Shown here: positions 26,419-49,546 of the stretch, one piece after another | Numbering within the stretch: position 1 is the first letter of the stretch | Layout: every line of letters starts with the position of its first letter | Origin: Schmidtea polychroa | Lineage: Eukaryota | DNA length: 64,000 nucleotides | Assembly (NCBI GenBank): GCA_044892525.1 | Contig: CM097885.1 | Coordinates: forward strand, 139,934,001-139,998,000 | Reading direction: 5' to 3' | The notes under the pieces: generated by a model | What the model saw: the letters and a program-made list of their open reading frames with translations, nothing else | Told to the model about the DNA's origin: nothing | The model's database searches: none | Translations under genes and position numbers: made by a program

Positions 26419-26586
26419 AAAGGATTATGACTGTATATAGATTGTAAAAAGTAAGTAGGAAATATTTATTTATATAACAGTATTCTATATTTTTATATAA
26501 GCGCGGTATCAATAGTATATAATGATGGGGATAATTAATATGAAAATAAAATTAGATAAGGATTGAAAAGTATATATAAATTAAGA

Positions 26587-26946: not shown

Positions 26947-27035
26947 ATATAACCTAACATAGCAATGTAAATAAATGTAAATAAAAATACGAAACTGTAC
27001 CTGTAACGAATATATGTATATATATAATTATAGAA

Positions 27036-28424: not shown

Positions 28425-28641
28425 AGAGACGAATAATTTTGTATATACTAATTGTAAATATCGGCGTATATATCCAGTAAAATATTATATAGTAGTGTAG
28501 AAAATTCCCCCAAATCTACCAAAGGTAAACTTAAGCGAAAACTCCTAAAACAACTCCTATAACGAATTATAAAAATAAATAAATAATAAACCAGATATAA
28601 GCGTACAACGTTAAGTTAATGATATCGTTATTTAGACAAAG

Positions 28642-29679: not shown

Positions 29680-29852
29680 AGATAAAAGGAAAGATAAAAA
29701 ATATAAAAATCGGGACCTGTATCCCAACCAAAAAATTAATGGTACAGTAAAAGTATGAAAGGGACTGTAACCCTGACTATAAAATAACATATAAATGTAT
29801 AAGTATAAGCCGCACTGTAGCGCAATTATTAATTATGTATATATTATAGAAA

Positions 29853-30554
29853 ATGAACACTGAAAACGGACAACCCAGCATAACATCTATAATCGAGTTA
29901 GAAGAGGGAGAAATTGAAGTTGATGAAGTGGAGAGGAAGAAAACTATCAAGGAAGAATTACAAGAAGAGAGACAGGAAAACGAAAGATTAGTTGAAAGAT
30001 GGAGAGATAATCGAAAAATGATTAAAGTATTGAAAAGAGAATATATCTTGTTAGAAGGAATAAAGAAAGAAGTAGAGGAAGAAAACGAATGGCTTCACGA
30101 GCAAAGAAAGCGAGGGAGAAATTGGGAAAAGATCGCGGAAGAATTATGGCAGGAGAGGGCCAGTCGAAAGGCCGACGAAGTGATTAGTGACTATTGGAAA
30201 ACCGAGGCACGGAAACACCAAGAAAGCCTGAAAGAGTTACAACTCCAACTACACCAAAAACAGAAAGAATGTGAGATAATGAGACGAATGAACAACAAAT
30301 ACCAGGAAATAGACAACGAAGAGGACGGGGAAAGGGAAAATGATTTTCTACAGATAATGAACCATAGAAACCTCGAAAGAGCAACACAAGAAATAAAAGC
30401 ACTAAAAGGAAAAATAATAACCCTAAGGCAACAGTTAGACGAAAGAGACAAACAATTAAAAGTACTACCCGAATTGAGAAAACGAGTAATAAAAGCGGAA
30501 ACGAGAGTGATGAGAACATCCGAGAAAACCCGTAAAAAGAAAACCCGGCAATAA
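29853..30554 (+). CDS. Accessory coiled-coil protein, 233 aa
   Basis: Intact E/K/R-rich heptad ORF with an acceptor-like TTATAG just before the ATG. Confidence 0.75.
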   Translation: MNTENGQPSITSIIELEEGEIEVDEVERKKTIKEELQEERQENERLVERWRDNRKMIKVLKREYILLEGIKKEVEEENEWLHEQRKRGRNWEKIAEELWQERASRKADEVISDYWKTEARKHQESLKELQLQLHQKQKECEIMRRMNNKYQEIDNEEDGERENDFLQIMNHRNLERATQEIKALKGKIITLRQQLDERDKQLKVLPELRKRVIKAETRVMRTSEKTRKKKTRQ

Positions 30555-30609
30555 TTAAAGATGAATGATCAATGTAAATAATTGTAAATAAAAATTTTCG
30601 TATAGTAGT

Positions 30610-31236
30610 ATGTGGTTCGGAGTAACCCTGGTGACAATAATGATGATAGCGATAAACGGGATACCCATGTGGCAGCCAATCCCAACATTCTGGGAGAATC
30701 CCGAGAAACAGCAAAACCCTTTAACCAAACTAAAAAGCGAGAGAAAGCTCTCCAACAACATCCCGAAACAATGCTGGAACAAAGTCGTCTGGGAAAAACT
30801 TCAAATGCAACTCCACCTACAAACCCAAAAAATCGAACAGCTCGAAATTCTCTTACAAGAACAAACCACCCAACAATCCTTGAAGGAAATCATCATGAAG
30901 AAGGAAGTAAAAGAAAGCCAAGTCTTACTCTATACTACCATCAGTGAAACCCTTATCATCTGCGCACTAGTCATCTGGAAAGCGTATGATATTCATCGAA
31001 CATGGAGAAGAAACCAGTCACTATCCGAGAAACAAGAAAGAAAGAACCCACGATCGAAAAATAAACATAAACGAGCAGTACATTTTCAACAACCAAACCC
31101 ACCCGACCAAATGCAACAAAATCTATCTCCTGACCAAATGCCTGTTACAATCCAGCTCCCCACGATAACAACTTCAACCAGCCATCCGACCCAGAATTCA
31201 ACCAACCAAGACATTCCGAACCTTGAGATCATGTGA
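30610..31236 (+). CDS. Accessory type I membrane protein, 208 aa (SP, coiled-coil ectodomain, TM, P/Q/T-rich tail)
   Basis: SP MWFGVTLVTIMMIAING, TM VLLYTTISETLIICALVIW, basic stop-transfer residues follow. Confidence 0.75.
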   Translation: MWFGVTLVTIMMIAINGIPMWQPIPTFWENPEKQQNPLTKLKSERKLSNNIPKQCWNKVVWEKLQMQLHLQTQKIEQLEILLQEQTTQQSLKEIIMKKEVKESQVLLYTTISETLIICALVIWKAYDIHRTWRRNQSLSEKQERKNPRSKNKHKRAVHFQQPNPPDQMQQNLSPDQMPVTIQLPTITTSTSHPTQNSTNQDIPNLEIM

Positions 31237-31433
31237 CATCGACCATTCATAAACTTATTGTGTATAAATCCGGTCACCTAAAGTGGCCACTGCTTGCTTA
31301 TATTTGTCCTTTTATCTGTTTGATTAAAGTATTATTTAGTTATTTTAATTTTATGTTTGTGTGAATGTTGACCGTGAAATTAGTTGTTATGCCGAAAAAA
31401 GGTATGAGTTAAACGTATGATATTATGTGAATT

Positions 31434-31467
31434 GCGGGGCGCAATTTTAACGGGCCCCGGAGTGATT
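31434..31467 (+). promoter_or_regulatory. E1 PPT-equivalent region (atypical, GC hairpin)
   Basis: GCGGGGCGCAATTTTAACGGGCCCCGGAGTGATT directly before the 3' LTR. It resembles the E2 pre-LTR GCGGACATTATCTTAACGGCCCAGGGAGGAA. Confidence 0.5.
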
Positions 31468-34400
31468 TGTTGGGCTAAAATGCGGAGTGGAGAAAACTGG
31501 AGCGAATAGAAAAATAAACCCCGAAAGATAGATGAAATAAAATAAAAATATAAAGTACCATAAAAATCTTACTAGTAAATAGGAAGGAACAATAAAAGAA
31601 CAACAAAAGAATAAGAATAAGTAAACAAACTAAATAAAATCCAATAAACCCCTTAAGATTTAGAAATAAAACGGGTTAAGGTACACAGCGGATAAAATAG
31701 AAATAGAATAAGTAAAAAAGTGACAACAAATAAAAGAGAAATTTAAGAAATAAATAAAAAATAAAACTATCTTTAAGTCTAATTAAAACAAAAAATTATA
31801 TTACAATAAAGTAGCAATAAACCTACAGGAAAAATAGGAGGAAAATAATAAAAATAAGAAAATAAATAAAATAATAATAAGAAATAAGTTAAGTCATTAA
31901 AATCTAATATATTATAATAAAAAACATAAAAATGATAATAAATAGTAAAAATACAAGCAGGTAGCGTCCTGATTGGACGAAAAATACTATATATGTAACG
32001 TGAAAAATTAGACGACAACCACTTTTAATTTTTCACGATTACAGGTAAAATTTTAGAAAAACTTAAAACCACTTTTAATTTTTCACGATTACAGAGCATA
32101 GACTTCAGATATTTCACCGAATTCAGGACTAGAATCGCAAACACTAATTCCAGAGATTTTCAGAACTTACCTTTAATTTAAATTCGATTTCGTTCCAGTT
32201 TTTGAAACTATCAGTAGGTTGATTGATTTATATGTATTAGTTAATTCATTAATGATGAAAAACAAAACTCATTTCGTAAAATAAATTTATTGAAATACAA
32301 ATGGCCTTTTCTTCATGGTGCCGGCGACTGTACCATCTGAGAGCTCCCAGTATGATGTGGACGAGTTGGAAATGTACCACGGTAGAGAACACGACAGTGG
32401 GAAGGTTGACCTTCTTAAGAAATCCCGAAGATGCTGAAAATGAGAATGTGATATTTGCAGAGAAAGATATTTACCATAGGAGAGATCTACCAAGGGTATG
32501 ATGAGGCTGCGGTTGTGTGGAATGAATAACATCATACTTGGAGTCCAAATGATAGGGTCGCCGGGTGAGCTTTATTGATTCATTTATTCTTTATTGATTC
32601 ATTTATTTTTATTGATTCATTTGCTGCTATTTGATTCCTTCATTCATTTTATTATTCATAAATTGTATATTAAATATTGATTTTGTGAAAAACGAGTCGA
32701 ACGGTCCCTCATGACGATGCAAGAACGGCGGCAGAGATGATTGCCTTCTTGGGTGGGTCATGAGGGGTGAGGAGACTCCGCAGGTGGAATACTGTTGGCA
32801 GTGGAATTTCTCACCTCGAGCGCGATCTGATAGAGAATCTTTCGTTTTCTTTCATGAAGTCACGCCGAAGTTTCAGAGTAGATAATGTAAATTTCCAAAG
32901 TCGGAGACAATTTTTCGGATTGCGATCAGTAGTTCGTTGTTGTTAGGAAAACTTGCTTTTCCGTCGAATATTGATAGATGTCTGAGTAGGAATGGGCGAT
33001 GAATTGTTAGAGTTTTCACTGGAAGATCTGCTAAGCACTTAAAAATTGAACCCCGAGAGGTACATTGCAGGGACATTAGCGAGTAAACCCATTCATTGAC
33101 TAATTTAGACTTTAGCTTGACATTGAATATCTGATAAAGTTTGGTTTGACGTTGACAGCGGCTCGTCTAAAATGGGAAAGTAAACAAATTTTTTGATAAG
33201 GAAATAAATCACTTGCCGTGAGTCCGAGTGAAGATATCAATAGCGATAGGAGAATCATTAGTTGCCCATGGCCAGATAAATTTCCGACGGGGAAAATCGG
33301 CTGATAATTTGATAAAGTCATCGAACGAGTTGATTGAGAAGGCGGCGGTCGATCGAATGTATTGAGTGGTCTTATCGTGAGTCGACCTAATATCGAAAAT
33401 CCAGAATATAGAGTAATTTTTATCTACTGAATCCGCAAGTCACCCACACAATCGAATTTCTTGAGTTTTGGACACACCAACTGAGTACCCTTCACAACTA
33501 GAGCATCTCTCTACAACTCTACCTCTATAAATCGCTCGCCCACATGTACACATGCATCACACTCAGATTAGGTCACAGTGCACATGTGGATATCATCATT
33601 ACCTAATCATAGGGAGAGAGTCGTACACTGATAACTGCTGGTAGACTACTGGATTGCGTCAGAGAACATGGCAATGCGACGAGAAATTTTTTTTTCTGTC
33701 AGTGTGCAAGTCGCTAGTTAAACGCACCAACATGCATCGTAACGAACCCATCGATAGTTGATGGTATAGATAGACAATCAAATGAACACATAACTGCGCC
33801 CGATTTAAGCGTCACTATGACGATGTTTATGACGTTAAATTTGAAATAACAAATTTGTAATCCATGATAAAAATTTTAAGCGAGGGTATTATGATTTTCT
33901 TACAAACCCGAGGGGTCTACATACAAGACGGGGTGTCCCGGTAATTGCCGATTTTCCGTTCATCATACAGCACGCGTAGAATCTAACGACGTAGCAGCAA
34001 AATGAGTAAAATATAATTGTTAAAATGTAACAACGATAATTAAGATAATAGCGTTCATAGTAACGAATTTACCGTTATGCCGTAGTTAAAAATAGTCAAA
34101 CCCGTAAAGTAAACCTAAAAGCTAGCATAATGAATTGTTTTCATGAATCCCGTTTTCTTCTCATAAAGTAGTGATGATTACATGGGTCAGTTTAGATGTT
34201 TGAGATTGCATGAAGGTGAGTATTTGCCGACGGGGTAGATCGGTAGGCCACTCTTGGATAACTTGGTCGGGGAGGTCTTAAATTTCGTTTTCCGAACATA
34301 TGAATAAGACCCCAGCGAATTTTTTTATTTAAAAATAAAAATTTCTTAACAATTTAGATGAATACTTCAACCAGTTCCGGGAAAACCCTCAGACCTTGCT

Positions 34401-35657
34401 TTTCCTGTGCTGATAAAAATGCCGATATCGCACAGCTCCACTTGTACATCGGGGAATTGAAGAAGAGAATTGACCTCTATGAGGGAACGTGGTTCTCCCC
34501 ACCACAAATGAAGGAGGAGAAGAGCAAGATTCTGCGTTTGGAGCACTGCCGTGACAGTCTCCTGGAAGAAAGCAGGTGCCAGAGGTTAACCATAAAGGCC
34601 CAATCAGAGGCACTGCACAAGGTGTATTCCGAATCAGAACTAGCGAAGCGAGTTCGCGAGTACCCGATACAAGATGGGACTAACGTGTTCCCAATGCACC
34701 ACAAATTAGCTGAAACCTCATCAATATCCAGTTGTAAAGGGCATGGCCCACAAATGCCGCCAATTCCCGCCCCAGTCCTTTCAGGCGATCGACCTATGGC
34801 TGGCGGTTCATCGGACCCTATCTTGGCTCCAGTACTCGTGCCACACCTCCTTCAGCCCCCAGCAGAAGCTACACTCCCCCATCGAAAGCGTAAGCGGCTG
34901 ACGCGTTCTGAAAAAAATCAGAAGCGGAGGAATGCCATGGCCGCGCTCGAAGCATCGCTATCTGTAGCCAAAGCAACTATCAAGGAAATTACAGTTACCC
35001 ATTCCATTCCTACAAAGGAAGTATTCCGGGTAGTTCCGGCCGGTAGTATCAAATTCCTCGAAGACCGCCGGCTGCCCGTTGACATCGACGAGATGCTCGC
35101 AGAGGGAGAAGCATTCTCGTAGCCAATTCTCTCTCGGGTCTCGATTCCCTGCTATTACGAACGAACTTGAAGAAGCGACGTTATCTCGTGACTAAACTTT
35201 AATGTTTTGCATTTACTTAAACAATGCTGAATGTAATTTGATGTTCCGTTCTAATATAACTGTTCGATTTTCTTTGATTGTGTTAATTGTATGTATGATT
35301 TGCTACGGTTGAATTGCATGAGAGAAGGATCACGAATATATAGTAGAAACTTAAATGTCGTACCTTTTGGACCAGGGTCAGACTGAATGATGCGTATAGA
35401 ATGGGTAAGACCTTCTAAGGCACCGTAGAACCCGAACCGAGAAAGGGTTAGGAGTAGTCCTAACGCAGGGGCTCACCTGCTAACTTTTTCCAACCCGTGT
35501 GAGCAGTACCAACGTGGAACATCACCACGGGCTCATACGTGGGAATATGCGAACGATCATTTGGAGTGTGTGAGGGAATGGTCTGAGTAGAATAATGATA
35601 CCTGATGCGGATGATAATCATGCCCATACGTTTTCTTTTCCCCCACATACGCCAACA
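31468..35657 (+). repeat. E1 3' LTR (4,190 bp)
   Basis: Copy of 5074-9263, followed by TSD CGAC. Confidence 0.97.
34358..35122 (+). CDS. 3'-LTR copy of the 254-aa LTR ORF
   Basis: Identical to 7964-8728 except T->K (SVATAT vs SVAKAT). Confidence 0.75.
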   Translation: MNTSTSSGKTLRPCFSCADKNADIAQLHLYIGELKKRIDLYEGTWFSPPQMKEEKSKILRLEHCRDSLLEESRCQRLTIKAQSEALHKVYSESELAKRVREYPIQDGTNVFPMHHKLAETSSISSCKGHGPQMPPIPAPVLSGDRPMAGGSSDPILAPVLVPHLLQPPAEATLPHRKRKRLTRSEKNQKRRNAMAALEASLSVAKATIKEITVTHSIPTKEVFRVVPAGSIKFLEDRRLPVDIDEMLAEGEAFS

Positions 35658-36036: not shown

Positions 36037-37084
36037 TGTTAGATGATGAGGGTAGGCCCATCACTACATTCAATTTAGATAAATATTATAGAACAGGGCC
36101 AGGCAAGTACAGGGTTAACGTGTACGCCGAAGAACGCCAGTAAAAGATTTCTCGTCGATACCCATCTATGAAAGCCAGATCGGCAACCAAACAATCCAAT
36201 TTCCCAAGCAAGAACCGATAGTTGAGCAGTGACTTTCATCGATATTCATTTATGTGTCAATAACCTTTATCGATATTCATTTATGTGTCAATAACTTTAT
36301 AATAATTTATTTTATTTCATGTGTGATTTATTGTAAAGAACACCATTTGTGAACTTTAGCAAACTCTGATCTTTTCATCGAATTTGTAGTGTGAATTTTT
36401 ATTTTTCAGTGTATTTTTTAATTTTAAACACAAATAAAAATAATGCATTTAAAAAAGAAATTAATTTAATTTAAAACTTACCACTAAAAATAATTCCAAA
36501 CATTTCCAATAAAATCAAAAGTAAACATAACATTTCCAATAAAATCAAAAATAAACATTTATATTCTGGTGAAAAAATCAATTCTAAAATAAACAGTTAT
36601 ATTAGAAAAATAAAAACCAATTTATTATATTAGAAAAATAAAACCAATTTAAAGTAAAAATAAACATTCGAATATAGAAAAAATAAAATAAATATTTATT
36701 TAATATTAGACATAGGAAAAATTTAGTATATAAGCAATCGTTAAAATCAGTTTATTCGCCCAAAAAATAGCGCAAAGATTTTATATTCGAAGGTAAATCC
36801 TGAGGATAATTCAATCATTTGAATCAGCACAAAACGATTCACAAATAATAAAAGCTTGCTAAGACACAACACGCACACACAACAAATAACAATACATATA
36901 CTTCTTTTTGCACGCATTTTGAGTTGAATAAATTGATAAACAAGTACCAACTTTTTTCAGAATTGTAACTGGATTTTATTTGGTAAATTTTATATTCAAT
37001 ACATTTTATTATATATTCGTCTTTGTTTTGATATATATATAAGAACCAGTAAGTTGGGTGTTCCCGATTATCGAGACCTCAACA
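36037..37084 (+). repeat. E2 5' LTR (1,048 bp)
   Basis: No differences from 48499-49546 in the segments compared by eye. Contains short internal duplications (TCGATATTCATTTATGTGTCAATAAC x2; AACATTTCCAATAAAATCAAAA x2). Confidence 0.97.
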
Positions 37085-37086
37085 TT

Positions 37087-37104
37087 TGGTGCCGCGAACC
37101 GGGA
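37087..37104 (+). promoter_or_regulatory. E2 primer binding site, most like tRNA-Phe
   Basis: TGGTGCCGCGAACCGGGA, 2 nt after the LTR. The vertebrate Phe PBS is TGGTGCCGAAACCCGGGA. The assignment needs the host tRNA set. Confidence 0.7.
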
Positions 37105-37323
37105 CTTTAAAATCAATTATTGTTATTCACAATTTGGGGGATAGGAATTGAGATCAGAGGGTATAGTATTTTATATTGGGAAAATATATTTATAAAAACA
37201 ATATCATTGACCAATTTTTAAATAAATAAATTCAGTTTTGAAAATTATTAAATAATTCAAAAAGATAAAATAGATAATCAACCCGAAATAGTTTATAATC
37301 TCAGAAATAGAATAGTCTATAGG

Positions 37324-39009
37324 ATGAATAATAATAATAATAATTACATAAAAATTTTACCAGTAGAACCATATAGAGGAGAGCCTGAAAAGTTCGACGA
37401 TTTTTTCACTGAGATCGCTCAGTATGCAGAAGCTTGTGGTTGGACACCTGATGAGTTAAAAATGAGAATACCACTATATTTAAAAGGTTATGCGTTACAG
37501 GCATACAATAACTTAGAATGTAAAGGAAATAATTTTGATCAACTCGTAAGATATCTGAGAGCAGAAATAGTAATCGATAGCGACTTACAAAAGATAAATG
37601 TTCAAAAATTTAGAAACAGATACCAAGGTACTAGAGAATCAGTTGGTGAATATGTATATACGATTACGGAGTTAGCGAAAAAGGCATTTGGTGCAGGCGA
37701 GCACACAGCAAAATTAATTGAGGATCAGTTTTGGAATGGTATACAAAAATATTTATATAAAGCACTAATTATGGTAGAATATGGTAATTTAAATGAATTA
37801 GTTCATAAAGCTAAGCGTATAGAAGCAATACAACGAGATAGATTTAGTTCACATGTAGATGCAATGGAAATTCAAAAGCCCATAGAGGTAAAATCTGAGT
37901 TGGGTAAGTCAGATGACAATATCCCCTGGGAGGAGATGAAGCAATTATATTTAAACTTTGTAAAAAATAGACGAAGGGTAAGCCCGAGTCCAGATAGAAG
38001 TCAATCACCTGAAAACAGGAGGAGGTTCGATAATGTGAGAAATAGAAATTTTGAGAATAGAAACAATAGAAATACTTTCGATAGAGACAATCGTAATGAA
38101 TATAATAGAAATAATTATACGAGAGATAATCGAGTCGATTTTAGTAGAAATAATTTGAGAAATAATAAATATGATAGAAATAATAGATATGATAATAGAG
38201 ATAATACAAATGAATTGAGACGTAGACAGACAAGTCCATATAGACAGAATTCATACAGAGAAAGGCGAGGGAGCCCTTATAATAATGATGGTAGAGATAA
38301 AGTAAATTTTAATGGACAAATCAAATGTTATAATTGCCAGAAATATGGTCACTTAGCTAAAGTATGCAATAATGCGCGAAGCGAATCGCCTAATAGAGTG
38401 AGATTTAAAAATGAGCCTGAGATAAAACAGATTAATAGTGCTGAGTTGATATCAGCTAATGATGAAATAAACAGTTTGAGAGAGGAATTAAAAGAATTTA
38501 AAACTCAATATGGGAGACTTATTGAGAGAAAGTTAGAAATGTCATTAAATGAGTTTCAGTGTTTTACCAATGATGTAGATATAGATAATGATGAGTTTCG
38601 TGAAGCAAGAGAAGCGGATGAGAAATTTCTTGCAGAAGCAAATAGATGTAAAGAATTAAAAGAGGAATTGAAAGAGACATTAGAGAAATGGCCTTATGAT
38701 GATAATGAGACATTGCGTATAATAAATAGAGTTCAAGTCGAAGGAATTGACTTAGAATATTTGAGAAATTTGATACCAATAATGGTAAAGAGACAAAATA
38801 TGACAAGAGTATTTGAATTAGAAATAGAATTGAAAGAAATGATAAAATGCTATGGTGAATTTGTGAGAAAAAATCAGAAATTACATGAGTCATTGAATAT
38901 AACTATTGAGGCAAAGGACCTTTCGAGAATACTTATGCGTAGTACAGGGGTACATGTTTGCACAAAAGTGAATAAAGTGAAACAGATGGCCCGAGAAATT
39001 GGGAGATAA
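37324..39009 (+). CDS. gag: E2 Gag (capsid-like, RN-rich linker, one CCHC knuckle, helical extension, first half of a Ubl domain), 561 aa
   Basis: PYRGEPEKFDDFF...YAEACGW...IPLYLKGYAL gag pattern; CYNCQKYGHLAKVC at ~38326. Confidence 0.93.
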   Translation: MNNNNNNYIKILPVEPYRGEPEKFDDFFTEIAQYAEACGWTPDELKMRIPLYLKGYALQAYNNLECKGNNFDQLVRYLRAEIVIDSDLQKINVQKFRNRYQGTRESVGEYVYTITELAKKAFGAGEHTAKLIEDQFWNGIQKYLYKALIMVEYGNLNELVHKAKRIEAIQRDRFSSHVDAMEIQKPIEVKSELGKSDDNIPWEEMKQLYLNFVKNRRRVSPSPDRSQSPENRRRFDNVRNRNFENRNNRNTFDRDNRNEYNRNNYTRDNRVDFSRNNLRNNKYDRNNRYDNRDNTNELRRRQTSPYRQNSYRERRGSPYNNDGRDKVNFNGQIKCYNCQKYGHLAKVCNNARSESPNRVRFKNEPEIKQINSAELISANDEINSLREELKEFKTQYGRLIERKLEMSLNEFQCFTNDVDIDNDEFREAREADEKFLAEANRCKELKEELKETLEKWPYDDNETLRIINRVQVEGIDLEYLRNLIPIMVKRQNMTRVFELEIELKEMIKCYGEFVRKNQKLHESLNITIEAKDLSRILMRSTGVHVCTKVNKVKQMAREIGR

Positions 39010-42000
39010 TGATAAAGTGAAACTGTATTTTAACGGCGTAGAAATGATGAATAATGAATATATAATTGACTATGGAGTAAACGTCATTGATAACAATATT
39101 ATTTCTGCAGTAATAGAAAGGCAAGAAAGTAAAGAAATTGATACACCAACTCCATCAGTAGAATTGAGTATAAACGACGAAAATGACTATGATAAATTAT
39201 TTAGATTGTGGGATGCTTCTTCAGGAGGAGCAATGAGGTCACCAACAGCTAGCGAGGAAATCTTTAAACCTATAGATACTAAATATGATAATTTACATGA
39301 GACAATAGAAAAAATTGCGAAACAAGCAAATATGCAGGATGCAGAGACGATGAGACGAGGTAGGGGAAGGCCTCGAAAATCGGAAATAGCCGAAAAGTCA
39401 GATGACAGAAAGGCAGCAGAGCGTTTAAGAGATATTGCAAATAATATGAGACAGGAAGTCCCAAAAAATCAGGATAATGACAAAGATATAAAGATGATAA
39501 CTGAATTAGTTAAAGCAATGAATATGAGACGATTTCCGGAAGCAAAACCATCAGCGTTAATAGAAAATATAGTTAAAAAGATTAAATTAATGGAAAAAGA
39601 GATTAGAGAATTGAGTGCAGAGGAAGCAAATGAAGAGACAGTGTTAAAGATATTATTTACAACAGGAGTTAATCGAGATAAAGTGATTACGGCAATGGCA
39701 TATTTAATAGCAAGATACAAGAAACTTTTGCGATTGAATCCAAAGAATCAAATAGAAAATATCGCTAAAATGATATATAATAAATTAAAGATAGATGCTA
39801 TGCCATGGATAAAATTAAAGGGAGGATGGAAAATACTGTATGATGAGAGTCTAATAGAAAGTGCTCAGGAAAGCGTAGAAGACAATATTAATGTAGAAAT
39901 AGATGATACGGAGGAAACAGTAAAAAATCTAGTAAATAAAACAACTATGAAACCAAGTCAAAAAGAAAGAAAGTCGACAATGTCAATAGTAATTATAGTA
40001 ATAACATTGTTATTAGATCTGATAAAAGGGAATAATGCGATCATAGCGTATGACTGTCAGAATCCTAAGTGGGGACAGAAATATTCATTATTAGATGTAG
40101 AAAATTGCCCAGAGGCTAATCCAACAAAACTAATTGTTGCAGATCCAAAGATTTTTCACATATATCAAGAGTCTGACTTCATTCACACTGAGGCAGGAGA
40201 GTGTATCGTTAAATATTCAGAGGAAAGTTTTGTATGTAATAAAATAGCGAGAACAATATTAACTCCAACATGGGCACCAGAAGCGATAATAATAGCACCA
40301 AGCGAATGTGAAAATGCATTTAAGACAAAAAGGATAAAAACGCCAGATGGATTTGAGTTAAATGCTCAGATAGGAGCACGAGTAAGGCAATTAGTAAATG
40401 TCGTTGGATGGTCATCAACAGGAGGATATTGTGAAGGAGGAACGTATAAAATATGGGGGCATGTAGCAGACAATATTGTAGTAAGACGACAATATTATAT
40501 TGAATTAAGGAAATTCAAGGCGTCATTTGATAGTTCATCAAAGAAAATGATGACACATAAGTTCTGCACATTAGATGAGACAAGCTGTGATACAGGCGAG
40601 TCAATGATCATATACAAAGTAAACAAATATGAATGCCATCTAACTAAACTAAAGACACTGAAATTCAGAACAATACGAAGTAAACAGTTCACGGATGTAG
40701 AATCCAAGAACATTAAAGACCAAAAACGACGAGCAACGATAATTCAAGAGAAAGATACACCAACGATATATATGTCAGATTCTGAAACAGAAGCGATGAG
40801 ATTTGTGGGGAAAGGTGAAAGTATCAAATGCGGAAAAGCAGTTATACAAACAAATTATGAAGGAATTTATATCAGCGGAAGTGAAATTAAAGAGGCAAAA
40901 TCGAAAATAGATAAATTCGATGTCAAGCTAGCGTCATACTTTAATAATAAAATCGATTACTTTTATCATCATCAGTTAGTACAATTGGACAAAGTATATC
41001 AAGCAACTATTGCAAACGATTGTAAACTTAACAGAGAAATTTTAAGAACAAAGATGGCGGTTGCAGTCACAAACCCAGATTTGATGGCACCAATTTTATT
41101 TGCAGAAAAAGGGACATTTGCAAGAGTCGTCGGTGAAGTGATACAAACATTTCAGTGCAAACCGGTTAGCGTATCTTTAGCAACGAATAATAAGTGCACA
41201 AACGAACTGCCAGTAGTGTATAAAGGAGAAACTGTGTACCTCCAACCAATAACAAGGATATTAACAGATAAAGACTATGTTCCGAGAAAAATTGATAAAT
41301 GTACTAATCTATTGGATCCATTATACAAAATAAATGATGATATGTGGATTACAATGTCAGATAGAAAAGAAGCGACTAAACCACAAAAACTAGAACTAAC
41401 CGAACTTGAGAAAAAGTTAGAATTTCAGGAAGTCAACGAAATGGAAAACAATGGGATGTATACGAGAGAGGCGATAGAAAGCGCCAGAAAACATATGTTA
41501 TTTCCTCATGAAAAAGAAAAAGTTCTTTCTATCATGGTAAACAAAATCATCGAAAATAGTTATGGAGGGAATTACAACTTTGATGTATTATTATCAAAAG
41601 AGCACTTCAAGAAAGTTGTGTATAGAGTATTATACAGCATATGGGGATATTTTGCGATTCTCGGAAATACGTTTTCCACTATATTGGGTATATATTATAC
41701 AGTAGCACTATTGAAAATGATTTGCTCATCATTAGTTTCGTTAAGACAACTGAGACAAGTTTTTGGTAATTCATATAAAATGATAGCATGTTTATGTCCA
41801 TTCATAGCCAAATATTTGATCACTGCGAGGCACGATAAGGAAATCAAACGGATGAAAAGTCGAAGGGAAGAGGGTGAAATAATGATCACCAATGAGAAAG
41901 AGGACGATACAAACAGATCAGAAAATACTGAGCAACCACATATTGGGTTATATGATAATCAAAGAGAACAATTGACAGAATTGAGAAATAATATTGAAAT

Positions 42001-45000
42001 TAGAATCCCAGGTGAAAATGGTAATTGTCATTGTGTTCCAAGGAAAACTTATGGATGTTACGGGTTAGAACTTGATGATATATTAGAAGGGTTAAATGAA
42101 GCAAGGCCTAAATTACAAATAGTGATAAATGATACGATAATAAAGGCATTATGTGACACAGGAGCAGCAGCTTCTATGATTCGTGAAGATCAGTTAACCG
42201 GAAACCAAAAGAAAAATATTGTGAGCACAAGAGATAGAGTAATTTCATTATCATCACATTACATACCATTAAAAGGAGATATCGAATTAACAGTCCACTT
42301 TTCGGATCAAGTGGTTGAACATGTCTTCAAGGTAGTAGCAGAATGTAAATGCGTATGTGTCCTTGGGATGGACATACTCAAAAAGTTAAAAAACTGTGTA
42401 ATCGATTTAACGGATAGTACAGTCAAACGGAAGGCAATATATCAAGACGCAAGATTTACTGAGGTAATTGCATTAGAGACATTTGAACTAGAGTATCAAA
42501 GTGATCATATAATTCCAGTAAAAGTTAATGTTAAAAGTGAGGACACTTTCACTTTCGAGCCTGAAACGGCAATATCACGAAATCATAACGTAATGTTAAC
42601 AGACGAGTGTGTAATTCCAAATAATGGGATAATTCCAATAAGAATCGCGAATTACGAAAGAAATAAAGTAAAAATTCATAAAGGTACAAAATTGGGAAAG
42701 TTGTTCAAAGGTGAATTAGAGCAAACATTTGAAGTATGTGAGATGTCGATGACGAAGGATGTCAGTGAAAGAATGGTCGAACAGAGTAGAGCGAATAATA
42801 TCAAATTTTATGATAAAATTAAAATAAATAATAATTATCTAAATGAAACACAACAACTACAACTACAAATATTACTTGACGAATACAGTGATGTTTTTGC
42901 AAAACACGAATTTGATTTAGGAGATACTGACATTATCAAACATGTAATCGATACAGGGAATGCTAGACCAATAAAACAGAGACCCTATAGTGTACCATAT
43001 AAACTGAGGGAGGAAATAAAACGACAAATTAAAGAATTAAAAGAGGCAGGCGTAATAAAACAAAGTTTTTCACAATGGGCATCACCTATCGTACCAGTTA
43101 GAAAGAAAGACGGGGAAATTCGAATGTGCATTGATTATCGTAAATTAAATGATGTAACAGTAAAAGACTCATACCCATTCCCAAAAGCACAAGAACAATA
43201 TGATAAACTTAGAGATACTAAATATTTCACAGTAATAGATGCAAATAAAGGCTACATGCAAATTCAAATGGAAGAGGGGGAGGCGGAAAAGACAGCTTTT
43301 GTGATAGAAGACGGTTTATATGAATATACAAGATTACCTTTTGGATTAACTAATGCGCCAGCAACATTTCAACGTTTAATGAATACAGTATTAGTAGACG
43401 TACAACATTGCGCAGTATATATGGATGATATATTAATTTCATCAAAAACATTTGAGGAACATCTAAAAGATATAGCTAACGTACTAGAAAGATTAAGAAA
43501 AGCAAAAATCAAAATAAAACATACTAAGTGTAAATGGGCAGAACCTTCAGCATTATTCTTAGGACATATAGTTACAGTAGATGGTATAATACCTAATCCC
43601 GATAAAATTGAAGTAGTTAAAAAATTCCCAGTTCCAAAAACATTACAACAAGTACAGGGATTTTTAGGTCTCACAGGATATTATCGTAAATTCATACAAG
43701 ATTATGCAAAAATAGCAGCACCACTAATTGAATTAACAAAAGGAGTCAAAACAAAGGGAGAGAGTAAAGGAGTGTTAATAGTGCAGGAAATTAACGATAA
43801 AATTAACAAGCCACAAAAGAAATGGAAAGATGAACATCAAAAAGCTTTTGATCAACTAAAAGAAAAATTAATAACAGCACCGATACTAAGATACCCAGAC
43901 TTTAAAAAACAGTTTATTATCATGACAGACGCCAGCGGGAAGGCCGTAGGGGCAGTCTTAGGACAAGAAGAGGAAAAGGGTAAAGATTATGTAATAGCTT
44001 ATGCAAGCAAAACATTAAAAGGAGCACAGATTAGGTACTCAACAATTGAGAAAGAATGTTATGCTATAGTTTTTGCATTAAAACAATTTAAACCATACAT
44101 ATATGGAACTGAAGTAGTAATTAGAACAGACCATAAGCCATTAGAAGGGTTATGGAAACATAAAGATACATCCAGTAGACTGTTAAAATGGGCAATGAAA
44201 ATACAAGACATGCACATAAAGATTGCATACAAACCAGGTAGAATAAACAGGAATGCAGATGCATTATCACGAATTCCAGAGTTAGGAGCACTAGAAGTTT
44301 TTGCATTAGTAACCGAAAAACCAATAGAAATATATGAGGAACAAATGAAAGATCCAGAACTCTTCAAGATAAGAGAAGAAATAAAAAAGGGAACTAACCA
44401 AAAGTATAAAATCTGTAAGAAGTTAATTGTTATTGAGGATTTTAGCGGTAAACAATTAATAGTAGTACCACAAAGATTAAGACAAATTCTTCTGTTACAA
44501 TACCACGATGGTGCTTTAGGAGGTCATTTATCAAGTAGGAAAACAGCAAGCAGATTGATGCAAAAATATTATTGGGACGATTTGAAAAAGGATGTCAAGA
44601 GATGGTGTAATGCATGCACAATATGCGCAACTAGAAAAAATACAGGAACAAAAACTAAAGCACCTTTACATCCAATCCCAGCTACAACATCACCAATGGA
44701 ATTGTGCGCAATGGATTTTTTGTGTAAACTACCCACAACAATTAAGGGGAATAAGCACATACTAGTTTTTAGCGATTATTTTACAAAATGGGCAGAGGCA
44801 TTTCCTACAAAAGATGAAACAGCAGAAACAGTAGCTAAATTACTTGTGGAAAAAATAATCTTTAAAATCGGTACACCGAGAAAATTACTAACAGATAAAG
44901 GGAAAAATTTCATGAGTGAAACTATAAAAAGAGTAGCTAACATATTTAACATGCATAAAATCAACACAACAGCATACCACCCTCAGACCGATGGTTTAGT

Positions 45001-46414
45001 AGAAAGATTCAATGGGACATTGCTAAGTAGATTAGCTGTGTTTGTGGGGAAAAACCAAAATGATTGGGATGAATACGTTAATCAATGTACATACATCCAT
45101 AATATCACACCAAATGAGACAACGGGATATTCACCATATTTTCTAATGTTCTTAAGAGAGCCTGCGACACCGATTGATACGATTTTTGAACCTCGAGTAT
45201 CACAATATTTAGATGCGCCAGATTATGTAACATTAATGCAAGAGAGATTACAAGAGGTATACAAGGTTGCAAATTTAAAAGTTAAATTCAGACAAGAACA
45301 ATATAAAGCAGATTACGATAAAAATAGCAAACCTCATAATTTTAAAGTGGGAGATAAGGTTAGACTTATGTCTCCACAAGTAGGAAAAGGCAAAACAACT
45401 AAATTAGCAAGACCATTTAAAGGACCATACGAGGTAGTAAAAGTAATACATGAAAACCTGCATTTACAAAAACATAAAAATGAGGATCCTATAATAGTAC
45501 ATGTTAACAGATGCAAATTAGCAGAAACAGAGTTAGTAGAAAAACCACCTCACAAATATGGATTACGATCGCAAAAAGCACTAATGATGGCAGCGACATT
45601 TTTAACAATTATAGGGTTGTGTAAATCAACTGAAGTGGAAAACGAAAACATACACTCAGTAGAATACATGGCTGAAGATATTTTAATCAACATTTCACCA
45701 TATAAAATTAGAGTATATAACTTAAATAAATCACCAATAAGAGACTTGTATCTGGAAACTAGGGATAATATACCCAAACTTATGAAAAAAATTGAAAATA
45801 GATCAACTAATGAATTTGAAAGAGGGGATAATGTTGAATTCGGAAATCTGCAACCCAACACTAATTACACACTTTGTGCACAATGGAATACATTAGTTGA
45901 CACATCACAGATAAGGTGTAAAAGACTAAAAACTACTAAAATAAACAGACTAAGAATAAGAAAACCAAAAGGAAAGAAGATATCAACAACCAGAAAAACA
46001 ACTACTATAAATTCAACACCCACACATCCTATATCACAAACGATAACGAATATATATAGGAAAACGACATTTAAAGCGGTTAGACAAATATATAAAAAAT
46101 TAATAATGAAAAATCCAAGACAGTCTGATAGGAAACTGATAAAATTACCTACAGGAAAACCGATAGTTATAAATAACTGGAATGAATTACAAGTATTTCA
46201 AAAGAAAGCAAGCAAACCACAATGGCCTTTTTATATAATAGCTACAAGTGTAGTATCATTCGCGATTTTAGCAATTGTCACTAGTGTACAAGTTTATAAA
46301 AAGTACAAGTGGAAAAGGCAGCGGTATCGGCACCGACTGGTCAAAGAAGCACCAGGGCATTTTCACTTGGACAAATATATCCCTGGACAATATACTCTGT
46401 CCACACTGGTATAA
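38999..46414 (+). CDS. pol: E2 polyprotein in the +1 frame: Ubl half-AT-hook-Bcl-2-like-chuvirus-type glycoprotein-PR-RT-RH-IN-SP/FN3/TM
   Basis: RRGRGRPRK; LFTTGVNRDKVI and WIKLKGGW; IIAYDC...YSLLDVENCP; LCDTGAA; YMDD (43418-43429); TDASG; integrase DDE and GPY; VEFGNLQPNTNYTLCA; TM FYIIATSVVSFAILAIVTSV. Confidence 0.96.
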   Translation: MGDNDKVKLYFNGVEMMNNEYIIDYGVNVIDNNIISAVIERQESKEIDTPTPSVELSINDENDYDKLFRLWDASSGGAMRSPTASEEIFKPIDTKYDNLHETIEKIAKQANMQDAETMRRGRGRPRKSEIAEKSDDRKAAERLRDIANNMRQEVPKNQDNDKDIKMITELVKAMNMRRFPEAKPSALIENIVKKIKLMEKEIRELSAEEANEETVLKILFTTGVNRDKVITAMAYLIARYKKLLRLNPKNQIENIAKMIYNKLKIDAMPWIKLKGGWKILYDESLIESAQESVEDNINVEIDDTEETVKNLVNKTTMKPSQKERKSTMSIVIIVITLLLDLIKGNNAIIAYDCQNPKWGQKYSLLDVENCPEANPTKLIVADPKIFHIYQESDFIHTEAGECIVKYSEESFVCNKIARTILTPTWAPEAIIIAPSECENAFKTKRIKTPDGFELNAQIGARVRQLVNVVGWSSTGGYCEGGTYKIWGHVADNIVVRRQYYIELRKFKASFDSSSKKMMTHKFCTLDETSCDTGESMIIYKVNKYECHLTKLKTLKFRTIRSKQFTDVESKNIKDQKRRATIIQEKDTPTIYMSDSETEAMRFVGKGESIKCGKAVIQTNYEGIYISGSEIKEAKSKIDKFDVKLASYFNNKIDYFYHHQLVQLDKVYQATIANDCKLNREILRTKMAVAVTNPDLMAPILFAEKGTFARVVGEVIQTFQCKPVSVSLATNNKCTNELPVVYKGETVYLQPITRILTDKDYVPRKIDKCTNLLDPLYKINDDMWITMSDRKEATKPQKLELTELEKKLEFQEVNEMENNGMYTREAIESARKHMLFPHEKEKVLSIMVNKIIENSYGGNYNFDVLLSKEHFKKVVYRVLYSIWGYFAILGNTFSTILGIYYTVALLKMICSSLVSLRQLRQVFGNSYKMIACLCPFIAKYLITARHDKEIKRMKSRREEGEIMITNEKEDDTNRSENTEQPHIGLYDNQREQLTELRNNIEIRIPGENGNCHCVPRKTYGCYGLELDDILEGLNEARPKLQIVINDTIIKALCDTGAAASMIREDQLTGNQKKNIVSTRDRVISLSSHYIPLKGDIELTVHFSDQVVEHVFKVVAECKCVCVLGMDILKKLKNCVIDLTDSTVKRKAIYQDARFTEVIALETFELEYQSDHIIPVKVNVKSEDTFTFEPETAISRNHNVMLTDECVIPNNGIIPIRIANYERNKVKIHKGTKLGKLFKGELEQTFEVCEMSMTKDVSERMVEQSRANNIKFYDKIKINNNYLNETQQLQLQILLDEYSDVFAKHEFDLGDTDIIKHVIDTGNARPIKQRPYSVPYKLREEIKRQIKELKEAGVIKQSFSQWASPIVPVRKKDGEIRMCIDYRKLNDVTVKDSYPFPKAQEQYDKLRDTKYFTVIDANKGYMQIQMEEGEAEKTAFVIEDGLYEYTRLPFGLTNAPATFQRLMNTVLVDVQHCAVYMDDILISSKTFEEHLKDIANVLERLRKAKIKIKHTKCKWAEPSALFLGHIVTVDGIIPNPDKIEVVKKFPVPKTLQQVQGFLGLTGYYRKFIQDYAKIAAPLIELTKGVKTKGESKGVLIVQEINDKINKPQKKWKDEHQKAFDQLKEKLITAPILRYPDFKKQFIIMTDASGKAVGAVLGQEEEKGKDYVIAYASKTLKGAQIRYSTIEKECYAIVFALKQFKPYIYGTEVVIRTDHKPLEGLWKHKDTSSRLLKWAMKIQDMHIKIAYKPGRINRNADALSRIPELGALEVFALVTEKPIEIYEEQMKDPELFKIREEIKKGTNQKYKICKKLIVIEDFSGKQLIVVPQRLRQILLLQYHDGALGGHLSSRKTASRLMQKYYWDDLKKDVKRWCNACTICATRKNTGTKTKAPLHPIPATTSPMELCAMDFLCKLPTTIKGNKHILVFSDYFTKWAEAFPTKDETAETVAKLLVEKIIFKIGTPRKLLTDKGKNFMSETIKRVANIFNMHKINTTAYHPQTDGLVERFNGTLLSRLAVFVGKNQNDWDEYVNQCTYIHNITPNETTGYSPYFLMFLREPATPIDTIFEPRVSQYLDAPDYVTLMQERLQEVYKVANLKVKFRQEQYKADYDKNSKPHNFKVGDKVRLMSPQVGKGKTTKLARPFKGPYEVVKVIHENLHLQKHKNEDPIIVHVNRCKLAETELVEKPPHKYGLRSQKALMMAATFLTIIGLCKSTEVENENIHSVEYMAEDILINISPYKIRVYNLNKSPIRDLYLETRDNIPKLMKKIENRSTNEFERGDNVEFGNLQPNTNYTLCAQWNTLVDTSQIRCKRLKTTKINRLRIRKPKGKKISTTRKTTTINSTPTHPISQTITNIYRKTTFKAVRQIYKKLIMKNPRQSDRKLIKLPTGKPIVINNWNELQVFQKKASKPQWPFYIIATSVVSFAILAIVTSVQVYKKYKWKRQRYRHRLVKEAPGHFHLDKYIPGQYTLSTLV

Positions 46415-48605
46415 TAACTTAAAAAATTTTAATTACATAAATTGGTTAATGATATATAATAAAAGTATATATATTAATATTTATATAACTGCGTATAAGG
46501 TTAAACCTCAAATGCGCAACAAGCATAAATATTTATTATTTGTTTTTAGAATAGTAATAAGAAGTTTATCGAGTCAATTCAGTCAAATCAATCCCCAAAT
46601 AAATCAGTCTAATCAAATCGATCCTCCAATAACCCAAAATCAAATCAGCCAATCTAATCAATCCAATCGTCTTCATTCAAACAAATCAATGCACCCACAT
46701 ACGTCAGTTCACATGCATTCTCAAAGAGCAAAACCTCAGCGAAATCCTGAAACTCAGAAAATAAGGCAATACGTGCCGATGTTACAGAAACACTACCACA
46801 GTTTCTATAAAAACCTGCAAAATAAGATCAGTACAGATGGTACTCCCATTACTATTAGAAGTTTCCCCAACCAAGTGTGCATTCCTAATGATATGAAAAT
46901 TGAGATAGAAGAAAGGGAATTGCATCTCATCAAATTCAACGAAGCAAGAAGAGTCAAATTAAGAGAATTAATCGGAGCGTATGACAAATTCCCCAATGCA
47001 GAGGAGGCTGCAAGAGCTGGAAAGAAAGTGCCCCATAGAATTTTATTTCACATCACAAAAACAGAGGTAGCAATATGCCAACAAAGGATACCATTAATCA
47101 CCACGAGCAATTGCACCATCACAATAAAAACTACAAAAAATGATCGCAGTGTCCCAAACGACTACAATGAATTGATAGTCCAAATGAACAGCCTACCCTG
47201 TGTCATAGCGATCGAAATATTATACATACCCACGATCCCAAATCCATTTCAGCAGTTGGAACTCATTAAATCAAACATTTATATGCATGGAGATTTCATC
47301 AGAAGAAAAATGTCATTTACCCACAAAGAATTATCCACGGCGGAGAGACATCATCTGATAATGTTTGTAGATGCAAAATTAGTATGCGACATCAACAATA
47401 ACTTCGGGCCAGTAGAGGTCAGCATACGGAATTTTAAGGGTGTAACAATATTTGATGAGAAAATTACACCTAGAACGAAAATCCTACATTATTATCCAGA
47501 GAAGACAAAGGCCAACAAGGAAAATATCATCGGGAATAAAGATGAATACAAAGCACTGGTCGAAATCCAACAGTTACTTTGCGGAAAAATAGTCGTAGGA
47601 TTCGACATCATCGGAAAACTCAAAGCTCTCACATTAGATCTCTATAATGTTATGGGAGTTAGAGAAATGTCGGAAGATATATTTATGTGCTCGTACGTCA
47701 AAAACGTTGCGCCACACAAGATAAAATTGTCCAACCTGGCATACCAGGTAATCAGACATCACAAAAGGTGGGACAAAGATAAACGCATAAATAGAATGCT
47801 GCGTGAACCCGAACCATTTCCAGCATGGCAAACCACAATGATCGTCAAAGTAATATACGCAATCGTAGAAAATCAATGGGAAGAAGTCGTTAAATGGGAC
47901 TCAGAGGCCTTCAGTGAACAACAAATGAAAGATCAATTATATCCCATTAAAGAAAGTGGTCTAGAGGATATGTCGGACGATGGAGAAGATATTTATATAG
48001 AACCATCGCAAATCGGATTGAAATTTAATAAAGATGGGACACGCAGGACTTTCGAAAATGAATTAATGGAAAGCGATGACGACATAATATTCATCGAAGA
48101 GGAGAAAATACGAATACCTGAAGCAACAGTCAAACTGGAATTACAGGAACCAAAATTCCATCCAGGAAAACTAATGGAATGCGACCTCGACTCTGATGAG
48201 GAATACTTCTCAATCAACGAGCAAGAGGAGGAAAATATGGATATAGACGAATTAGGACCAGAACCAGATATCGCAATCGAGGAGGAACCCAATTTTATCA
48301 TACCCAAGGAGAAGGAGCAGATTACAGAAAAGGAATTGACCCGACATTTTGGAAGGCGTATAAATGATGGCGACACATTAAATCTCGCATTGGCAAAAGG
48401 GTTCAACAGAACGAGGATGCTGATAAGAGACAGCGAAATCGAGCTGGTACGCAGTATAAGAGATAATGCGGACATTATCTTAACGGCCCAGGGAGGAATG
48501 TTAGATGATGAGGGTAGGCCCATCACTACATTCAATTTAGATAAATATTATAGAACAGGGCCAGGCAAGTACAGGGTTAACGTGTACGCCGAAGAACGCC
48601 AGTAA
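46275..48605 (+). CDS. E2 accessory ORF with a degenerate DEDDh (ISG20/REXO4-like) exonuclease domain (~47349-47875) and acidic tail, ending inside the 3' LTR; true start probably ATG 46512 or 46689
   Basis: IMFVDAKLV...VSIRNFKGVTIFDEKITPRTKILHY...IQQLLCGKIVVGFDIIGKLKAL...VREMS...IKLSNLAYQVI follows the REX4/ISG20 pattern. Confidence 0.75.
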   Translation: MSLVYKFIKSTSGKGSGIGTDWSKKHQGIFTWTNISLDNILCPHWYNNLKNFNYINWLMIYNKSIYINIYITAYKVKPQMRNKHKYLLFVFRIVIRSLSSQFSQINPQINQSNQIDPPITQNQISQSNQSNRLHSNKSMHPHTSVHMHSQRAKPQRNPETQKIRQYVPMLQKHYHSFYKNLQNKISTDGTPITIRSFPNQVCIPNDMKIEIEERELHLIKFNEARRVKLRELIGAYDKFPNAEEAARAGKKVPHRILFHITKTEVAICQQRIPLITTSNCTITIKTTKNDRSVPNDYNELIVQMNSLPCVIAIEILYIPTIPNPFQQLELIKSNIYMHGDFIRRKMSFTHKELSTAERHHLIMFVDAKLVCDINNNFGPVEVSIRNFKGVTIFDEKITPRTKILHYYPEKTKANKENIIGNKDEYKALVEIQQLLCGKIVVGFDIIGKLKALTLDLYNVMGVREMSEDIFMCSYVKNVAPHKIKLSNLAYQVIRHHKRWDKDKRINRMLREPEPFPAWQTTMIVKVIYAIVENQWEEVVKWDSEAFSEQQMKDQLYPIKESGLEDMSDDGEDIYIEPSQIGLKFNKDGTRRTFENELMESDDDIIFIEEEKIRIPEATVKLELQEPKFHPGKLMECDLDSDEEYFSINEQEEENMDIDELGPEPDIAIEEEPNFIIPKEKEQITEKELTRHFGRRINDGDTLNLALAKGFNRTRMLIRDSEIELVRSIRDNADIILTAQGGMLDDEGRPITTFNLDKYYRTGPGKYRVNVYAEERQ
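48490..48498 (+). promoter_or_regulatory. E2 polypurine tract
   Basis: AGGGAGGAA immediately before the 3' LTR TG. Confidence 0.75.
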
Positions 48606-49546
48606 AAGATTTCTCGTCGATACCCATCTATGAAAGCCAGATCGGCAACCAAACAATCCAATTTCCCAAGCAAGAACCGATAGTTGAGCAGTGACTTTCA
48701 TCGATATTCATTTATGTGTCAATAACCTTTATCGATATTCATTTATGTGTCAATAACTTTATAATAATTTATTTTATTTCATGTGTGATTTATTGTAAAG
48801 AACACCATTTGTGAACTTTAGCAAACTCTGATCTTTTCATCGAATTTGTAGTGTGAATTTTTATTTTTCAGTGTATTTTTTAATTTTAAACACAAATAAA
48901 AATAATGCATTTAAAAAAGAAATTAATTTAATTTAAAACTTACCACTAAAAATAATTCCAAACATTTCCAATAAAATCAAAAGTAAACATAACATTTCCA
49001 ATAAAATCAAAAATAAACATTTATATTCTGGTGAAAAAATCAATTCTAAAATAAACAGTTATATTAGAAAAATAAAAACCAATTTATTATATTAGAAAAA
49101 TAAAACCAATTTAAAGTAAAAATAAACATTCGAATATAGAAAAAATAAAATAAATATTTATTTAATATTAGACATAGGAAAAATTTAGTATATAAGCAAT
49201 CGTTAAAATCAGTTTATTCGCCCAAAAAATAGCGCAAAGATTTTATATTCGAAGGTAAATCCTGAGGATAATTCAATCATTTGAATCAGCACAAAACGAT
49301 TCACAAATAATAAAAGCTTGCTAAGACACAACACGCACACACAACAAATAACAATACATATACTTCTTTTTGCACGCATTTTGAGTTGAATAAATTGATA
49401 AACAAGTACCAACTTTTTTCAGAATTGTAACTGGATTTTATTTGGTAAATTTTATATTCAATACATTTTATTATATATTCGTCTTTGTTTTGATATATAT
49501 ATAAGAACCAGTAAGTTGGGTGTTCCCGATTATCGAGACCTCAACA
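48499..49546 (+). repeat. E2 3' LTR
   Basis: Copy of 36037-37084, followed by TTAA. Confidence 0.97.

Follow-up and report, generated by a model that had tools for sequence, protein, structure and literature searches.

Does a retroelement in the genome of Schmidtea polychroa carry a member of the Bcl-2 family, and if so, what might it do there? The question arises from a short segment at 39353-39845 (+ strand) within a stretch of 64,000 nucleotides (GenBank assembly GCA_044892525.1, contig CM097885.1, positions 139,934,001 to 139,998,000 of the forward strand), which was analysed as a whole and is called the window below; coordinates are those of the window. From the letters alone, the segment had been proposed to encode a retrotransposon-borne Bcl-2 homologue preceded by an AT-hook. 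We find that it belongs to a complete long terminal repeat (LTR) retroelement, here named E2, and we favour, with a probability of roughly 0.55, the reading that it encodes a divergent Bcl-2-family domain in the accessory cassette of Burro-type Ty3/gypsy endogenous retroviruses, with a pro-survival, tail-anchored mode of working included in that estimate.

A Bcl-2-like module in the second reading frame of E2

The segment lies in the second large open reading frame (ORF2) of E2, upstream of the envelope protein (Env), and the following features are needed for the argument:

36037..49546, + strand: E2, complete LTR retroelement of 13.5 kb (TG..CA bounds, direct repeats)
38999..46414, + strand: E2 ORF2, 2471 amino acids (aa), in a frame that differs from that of gag and overlaps gag by 11 nt
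39401..39838, + strand: Bcl-2-like helical module (Pfam-matched stretch 39563-39829)
39425-39448, + strand: LRDIANNM, in the first predicted helix
39641..39703, + strand: Bcl-2 homology 1 (BH1)-like stretch VLKILFTTGVNRDKVITAMAY plus the start of the central helix (HMMER alignments to Bcl-xL, three-way alignment)
39800..39829, + strand: BH2-like stretch MPWIKLKGGW (alignment to the GGW of Bcl-xL)

The four strings on which the original prediction had been built are all in frame in ORF2 (+ strand, 38999-46414), at or within a few bases of where it had placed them. A chance ORF or a coding segment on the opposite strand was considered and rejected, minus-strand ORFs being 61-83 aa long and the + frame belonging to the ORF of 2471 aa.

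Scanned on its own, the piece 39353-40033 had PF00452 as its best Pfam family (E=2.3e-6, 28.5 bits, profile positions 17-100 of 100), and the same family was matched in the scan of the whole of ORF2 (E=9.3e-5). Counterparts of the module are present in E1, the giant neighbour of E2 in the window, and in L001, a metagenome contig (JGI 3300027940, Ga0209893) found through its Env domain, where the module stands directly upstream of Env. For the positionally equivalent pieces of both elements PF00452 is the only apoptosis-related match (E1: E=0.038, 15.0 bits, profile positions 35-100; L001: E=0.031, 15.3 bits), and the matches of E2, E1 and L001 all stop at the W of GGW, the last position (100) of the profile. 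The three modules are collinear with the hook and Env and share 21-26% pairwise identity, with local alignments, made without the hook, reaching z = 4.8, 11.3 and 9.9 and none of 500 shuffles attaining the observed score. Judged by these alignments, the three modules are clearly homologous to one another. Moreover, hook, module and Env of the two window elements fall within one BLASTP alignment (E2 aa 111-953, E1 aa 1554-2427; 30% identity, E=2e-115).

Searched against the PDB with HMMER, a two-sequence module profile had Bcl-xL as its best match at E=0.15, and the three-sequence profile reached Bcl-xL at E=9.8e-4, with all 60 of the 60 best listed chains being Bcl-xL or Bcl-2; the signal thus rose 150-fold on adding the third sequence. 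A possible counterpart from the relative P0006 was left out of the profile, because the PDB signal became weaker with it (0.06 in place of 1e-3). No match came from word-indexed protein searches, made with the module region of ORF2 and with the three-module profile, or from a scan of IMG/VR, and four ORFs of the window had no exact counterpart in the protein collection. Taken together, these comparisons make homology to the Bcl-2 family likely.

BH1 and BH2 can be placed, BH3 cannot

Both the HMMER alignment to Bcl-xL and PF00452 agree in register with the BH1-like and BH2-like strings, and the original placement of the two strings therefore holds. BH1 of E2 reads G-V-N-R-D-K where Bcl-xL has GVNWGR, that is, GVN is kept, WG is replaced and a Lys stands at the position of the Arg; the residue at this position stays basic throughout (Lys in E2 and L001, His in E1). 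In BH2, which in E2 reads P-W-I-x-x-x-G-G-W, the GGW is invariant in E2, E1 and L001 and is aligned to the GGW of Bcl-xL. For LRDIANNM, a reading as BH3 finds no support: the string falls into the first predicted helix, some 73 residues ahead of BH1, in a register that corresponds to the BH4/helix-1 position and not to helix 2, and no profile alignment reached it.

Predicted structure

Two AlphaFold runs, one for the full cassette and one for the trimmed domain, used a two-row alignment of the window sequences E2 and E1 (L001 was not included), and what follows is drawn from the resulting low-confidence models. The predicted secondary structure is all-helical, with four helices before the BH1 turn and, after it, two more (21 and 24 residues long) that lead into a short turn, and in these models helix count and order fit the Bcl-2 layout. 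About 45 of the 50 best Foldseek matches in the PDB belong to the Bcl-2 family (Bcl-xL, Mcl-1, A1, BAK, BOK, Bcl-2 and a viral homologue), and one asfarvirus Bcl-2 homologue is among the weak matches. Among the predicted viral structures of BFVD there was no significant match, viral Bcl-2-like proteins appearing at ranks 28-44 with E of about 5.

Related elements with and without the module

The Env domain led to seven relatives, in which the GAG-ENV-POL order is the same. L001 came from a second metagenome scan, the first having given no match; its module forms the C-terminal end of an ORF of 997 aa (L001:67-3060), after which the Env frame follows. As negative controls, the pre-Env pieces of five relatives gave no Bcl-2 match in Pfam at E<=2. 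Additionally, three relatives scanned whole by Pfam showed no Bcl-2 signal, and the three-module profile found a convincing match in none of the seven.

Some further observations concern these contigs themselves. The metagenome that holds L001 also holds L003, a different element with a doubtful counterpart of the module that ends in D-E-W and not in G-G-W. In P0007 (also L002) several aspartic protease domains follow one another in tandem. Contigs L005 and L006, both from ENA sample ERZ25039515, have bacterial-looking genes (TetR, a luciferase-like monooxygenase) beside the element, which suggests a chimeric assembly.

The AT-hook-like motif and a ubiquitin-like half-domain

Two features precede the module in ORF2:

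39011..39115, + strand: C-terminal half of a SUMO/ubiquitin-like domain at the start of ORF2 (PF11976 Rad60-SLD, positions 40-72 of 72, E=0.072, weak)
39353..39379, + strand: AT-hook-like motif RRGRGRPRK, aa 119-127 (Pfam AT_hook, PF02178, 10.7 bits, below the cut-off of 17.4)

Basic residues around a GRP core are found in E2, E1 and L001 and in four of the seven relatives (P0002, P0004, P0007 and P0008), and thus in 7 of 10 related elements, at a distance of 110-235 residues upstream of Env. In P0007 what comes after the motif is a disordered linker and not a helical module. Because the motif is present there without the module, it is best read, from its distribution among these sequences, as part of the element backbone and not of the Bcl-2 module. 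Of the AT-hook that had been predicted to precede the Bcl-2 homologue, the conserved GRP motif with its basic flanks therefore stands, and its specific tie to the module does not. Contact with DNA or chromatin, a nuclear signal or a processing site are candidate roles for it.

A weak ubiquitin/SUMO-like match lies upstream of the hook in E1, L001, P0006 and E2. Since only the C-terminal half of the profile (positions 40-72) is matched at the start of ORF2, the ubiquitin-like (Ubl) domain of E2 seems to straddle the frame change between gag and ORF2.

Envelope protein and a hydrophobic segment with two possible roles

Downstream of the module, ORF2 continues into a viral-type glycoprotein:

39974..40042, + strand: hydrophobic segment before the Env ectodomain (Kyte-Doolittle scan)
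39986..41938, + strand: class III viral fusion glycoprotein, Env (PF24664 Monjiviricetes_fusion, E=8.4e-90)
41681-41737, + strand: Env membrane anchor, aa 895-913 of ORF2 (hydrophobic segment)

The first hydrophobic segment (aa 326-342 of ORF2) lies 48 residues after GGW, with an acidic linker in between. In E2, E1, L001, P0007 and P0006 such a segment is followed by small residues and the [YF]DC of Env. From this arrangement we infer that the segment is the signal peptide of Env inside the polyprotein and, putatively, also the membrane anchor of the module. The context of expression varies between the copies: in E1 everything is encoded by one ORF, in E2 the cassette comes after the gag/ORF2 frame change, and in L001 the module closes its own ORF, with the Env reading frame coming after it.

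The mechanism that we propose starts from an accessory cassette, consisting of the ubiquitin-like domain, the GRP/AT-hook-like motif and the Bcl-2-like domain, that lies between Gag and the in-frame class III Env. The polyprotein would be synthesised on cytosolic ribosomes, with Gag and the module remaining cytosolic, and the hydrophobic segment after the module, acting as the Env signal peptide, would direct the chain to the endoplasmic reticulum (ER). The Env ectodomain would then be luminal, and the Env anchor would return protease and Pol to the cytosol. Signal peptidase would cut before the [YF]DC start of the ectodomain, and after this cut the Bcl-2-like domain would face the cytosol while being held in the ER membrane by a C-terminal segment, as in cellular tail-anchored Bcl-2; such a C-terminal anchor of the module exists only if the chain is cut after the hydrophobic segment. 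The protease of the element may release the N-terminal side of the Bcl-2-like domain, and the anchored domain would act as a pro-survival factor by which element-expressing cells are kept alive. Fold, cleavages, membrane anchoring and the effect on cell death are all what we infer here from the order and character of the encoded parts, and we put forward this pro-survival, tail-anchored mechanism tentatively, at slightly less than even odds. Its most specific form, in which one hydrophobic segment serves two proteins, being the Env signal peptide whose cut makes the tail anchor of the Bcl-2-like domain, so that a pro-survival factor would be delivered to the ER just as Env synthesis loads the ER, is possible and less likely than not; this reading of a shared signal peptide and tail anchor was not found in the searched literature.

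Architecture of E2 and of its giant neighbour

The remaining coding features of E2 are as follows:

37324..39009, + strand: E2 gag ORF, 561 aa, with one CCHC zinc knuckle (PF00098, 21.1 bits)
42098..44983, + strand: E2 Pol, with protease (PR) 42098-42391, reverse transcriptase (RT) 43097-43573, RNase H (RH) 43823-44209 and integrase (IN) 44465-44983 (Pfam)
46275..48605, + strand: E2 ORF3, 776 aa, ending inside the 3' LTR

E2 is flanked by a 4-bp target-site duplication (TTAA, 36033-36036 and 49547-49550), and its LTR blocks (36035-37086 and 48497-49548) show 100% identity across 1052 bp. ORF2 holds, in this order, the Ubl half, the hook, the Bcl-2-like module, the signal peptide, the class III glycoprotein, PR, RT, RH and IN, and after the integrase it has a long C-terminal extension with a hydrophobic segment (aa 2408-2433). 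The order of its Pfam domains is Bcl-2 (PF00452, weak), Monjiviricetes_fusion, retroviral protease, RT, RNase H and integrase. A family match for ORF3 was not found in Pfam. E2 is an endogenous retrovirus of the Ty3/gypsy type in which Env stands in frame between Gag and Pol. That the segment would be carried by a retroelement was correctly predicted: LTRs, target-site duplication, gag and the PR-RT-RH-IN order are all present.

E1 lies upstream of E2 and has its own version of the cassette:

5074..35657, + strand: E1, Burro-like giant LTR retroelement of 30,584 bp (LTRs of 4,190 bp, 99.93% identical; target-site duplication CGAC)
16672..17214, + strand: E1 counterpart of the cassette, with hook KRAKGRPKK at 16672-16698 and helical module at 16747-17214, ending GGWKRL
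17338-17391, + strand: E1 signal-peptide-like segment (hydrophobicity scan)

The two elements are arranged head to tail, both on the + strand, with the end of E1 379 bp upstream of the TG..CA start of E2 (36037). A single ORF of 4811 aa in E1 (11983-26418) encodes gag, CCHC, Ubl, hook, module, Env, PR, RT, RH, IN and ankyrin repeats, and the Pol proteins of the two elements are 41% identical. Because their LTRs are near-identical and their long ORFs uninterrupted, E1 and E2 look like very recent insertions.

E1 also has accessory ORFs, located at 27036-28424, 9739-10218 and 28642-31236. A TRAF-like ORF (RING, TRAF zinc finger, MATH) is separate and lies downstream of Pol, a small ORF with an IAP-type RING (zf-C3HC4_3) lies between the 5' LTR and gag, and three further ORFs (345, 233 and 208 aa) are without a family match. 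The same ORF of 254 aa is found in both LTRs of E1 (7964-8728 and 34358-35122), without a Pfam match; it is unusual for an LTR of this length to be coding. Tandem units of 80 bp occupy 10723-11202, between the 5' LTR and gag of E1. Elsewhere in the window there are runs of N at 56798-57082 (285 bases) and 60842-60975 (134 bases).

Discussion

Several results weigh against a working Bcl-2-family domain in E2 and have to be set beside the profile evidence. No single Bcl-2 score passes its curated threshold: the 28.5 bits of E2 fall below the gathering cut-off of PF00452 (31.4 bits), and the scores of E1 and L001 are only about 15 bits. The single E2 sequence retrieved no Bcl-2 protein from the PDB, only two marginal matches to ribosomal protein S8, and phmmer with the module found no true relative among 1.84 billion representatives; its sole match, an acidic tandem-repeat protein, was rejected as spurious, as it matches the acidic linker only. 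None of the three copies keeps the WG pair of BH1, and a BH3 could not be located, predicted helix 2 being without a recognisable BH3 pattern. The AlphaFold models, from the two-sequence alignment, are of low confidence (pLDDT, the predicted local distance difference test, of 42.6 and 44.5), and with such a model Foldseek gave no significant match in the PDB (best E 0.38, template modelling (TM) scores of 0.3-0.46). Furthermore, the ORF that holds the module in L001 stops before the signal peptide, which leaves the anchor unattached there without read-through, and the module is dispensable for this kind of element, because sister elements exist without a detectable module and P0007 has a disordered linker in its place. 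The original claim of a Bcl-2 homologue thus holds as far as the likeness to the family profile goes, and is qualified by a score under the Pfam cut-off and by the loss of WG from BH1.

Alternatively, the Bcl-2 likeness could have arisen by chance or convergence in a rapidly evolving helical spacer with which Gag ends and which would link the capsid to the membrane or Env, or serve with the GRP motif as a chromatin tether, with no role in cell death. The sub-threshold Pfam scores and the unconfident models would be expected under such an account, as would the high variability of the hook-to-Env region among the relatives, where it is sometimes a disordered linker, and the conservation of the GRP motif independently of the module. 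However, three sequences that share 21-26% identity all point to one Pfam family, in one register and with one end residue, the PDB signal grew 150-fold with the third of them, the pieces at the same position in five relatives had no Bcl-2 match, and the list of best Foldseek matches, albeit from a low-confidence model, is almost purely Bcl-2 family; we therefore regard chance or convergence as quite improbable. A Bcl-2-type fold might, on the other hand, be present and not act on cell death, binding signalling adaptors and damping innate immune signalling of the TRAF/NF-kB type, as divergent Bcl-2 folds of poxviruses do; an anti-immune role was the second of the two offered in the original prediction. 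The loss of WG in 3/3 copies and the unplaceable BH3 speak for this, and the TRAF-like ORF of E1 (with RING, TRAF zinc finger and MATH), its RING ORF and its ankyrin repeats point to signalling or ubiquitination as targets, which have also been remarked upon for such elements (PMC6431247). Yet the likeness is to cellular multi-BH proteins, Bcl-xL first, with the GGW of BH2 included, and no poxviral Bcl-2-like Pfam family was matched in the E2 scans, nor was there a significant BFVD match for the low-confidence model. The immune-modulating Bcl-2 folds of poxviruses retain none of this multi-BH sequence likeness, including the GGW of BH2, and an immune modulator is in our view unlikely.

The module might finally be a membrane-permeabilising member of the BAX/BAK type, used for particle release or for spread from the expressing cell, with which the BAK and BOK structures among the Foldseek matches and the membrane segment after the module would agree. 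Against it, the sequence profiles put Bcl-xL and Bcl-2 first, at a divergence at which the pro-survival and the BAX/BAK class are indistinguishable by sequence, and a constitutively lethal domain translated before Pol would be expected to harm the element; we hold this to be very improbable.

Known elements that E1 and E2 recall are those named Burro or GYPSM1, for which Jurka 2007 is reportedly the source. In Schmidtea mediterranea these are giant gypsy-like elements of more than 30 kb with an internal region of up to 25 kb (Arkhipova and Yushenova 2019, PMC6431247). Their ORF1 of 4,873 aa comprises gag, CCHC knuckles, MATH/TRAF, a Ubi2/SUMO-like domain (PF11976), a BCL2-like motif, env and ankyrin repeats, with env in frame before the protease and matching fusion glycoproteins of mononegaviruses (PMC6431247). 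For Burro-2, -3 and -4 the BCL2-like motif is credited to Grohme et al. 2018, as cited in PMC6431247. A Bcl-2-like domain in Burro-type elements is therefore already known as a motif annotation, in print since 2018/2019, and no structure or functional test of this motif was found in the searched literature. We likened E1 and E2 to Burro by its published description, and identity with the named family is not implied. E1 fits that description nearly point by point (more than 30 kb, very long LTRs, a polyprotein of about 4,800 aa, the same domain order and a MATH/TRAF accessory), with the difference that its TRAF-like protein is encoded outside the large polyprotein and not inside ORF1. E2 shares the cassette order of Ubl, hook, Bcl-2-like domain, Env and Pol, yet it is compact (13.5 kb with 1-kb LTRs) and not giant as E1 is, has gag in a separate frame and is without the TRAF, RING and ankyrin parts.

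Compared with the cellular multi-BH proteins Bcl-xL, Bcl-2 and Mcl-1, the module shares the collinear BH1-like and BH2-like stretches, the terminal GGW, the predicted all-helical layout and a C-terminal hydrophobic segment, whereas the sub-cut-off score, the replaced WG, the want of a recognisable BH3 and the acidic linker of about 48 residues set it apart. It differs further in being part of a retroelement polyprotein, in which, in E2, the membrane segment of the module would double as the signal peptide of the protein that follows. Large DNA viruses are the typical carriers of Bcl-2 homologues. With those of herpes-, pox-, asfar- and iridoviruses the module has in common that a host-type cell-death regulator is found on a virus-like element, but here the carrier is a reverse-transcribing LTR element, and there was no significant match to a viral Bcl-2 by sequence or with the low-confidence model. 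E2 also resembles the GAG-ENV-POL 'errantivirus'-type elements, in that Env, a class III fusogen, lies between gag and pol. Such Ty3/gypsy elements with a class III (gB-type) Env are described from Platyhelminthes, Nematoda and Bryozoa in a report that mentions neither apoptosis nor Bcl-2 (0 times; PMC13524379).

In conclusion, the window offers two intact and very young copies, one giant and one compact, together with a reading of membrane anchoring that is testable. Should that reading be true, Burro-type elements would be the only known reverse-transcribing elements with a working Bcl-2, and the logic of its processing would be like that of flavivirus-type polyproteins. Planarian elements of this kind are abundant, and differentiated tissues transcribe them once PIWI control has been lost (PMC8532177); a pro-survival module could bear on the persistence of element-expressing cells. 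If the Bcl-2-family assignment is true, a retroelement in which such a domain stands beside TRAF-like, RING, ubiquitin-like and ankyrin parts would indicate that reverse-transcribing elements, too, are able to collect host cell-death and signalling genes.

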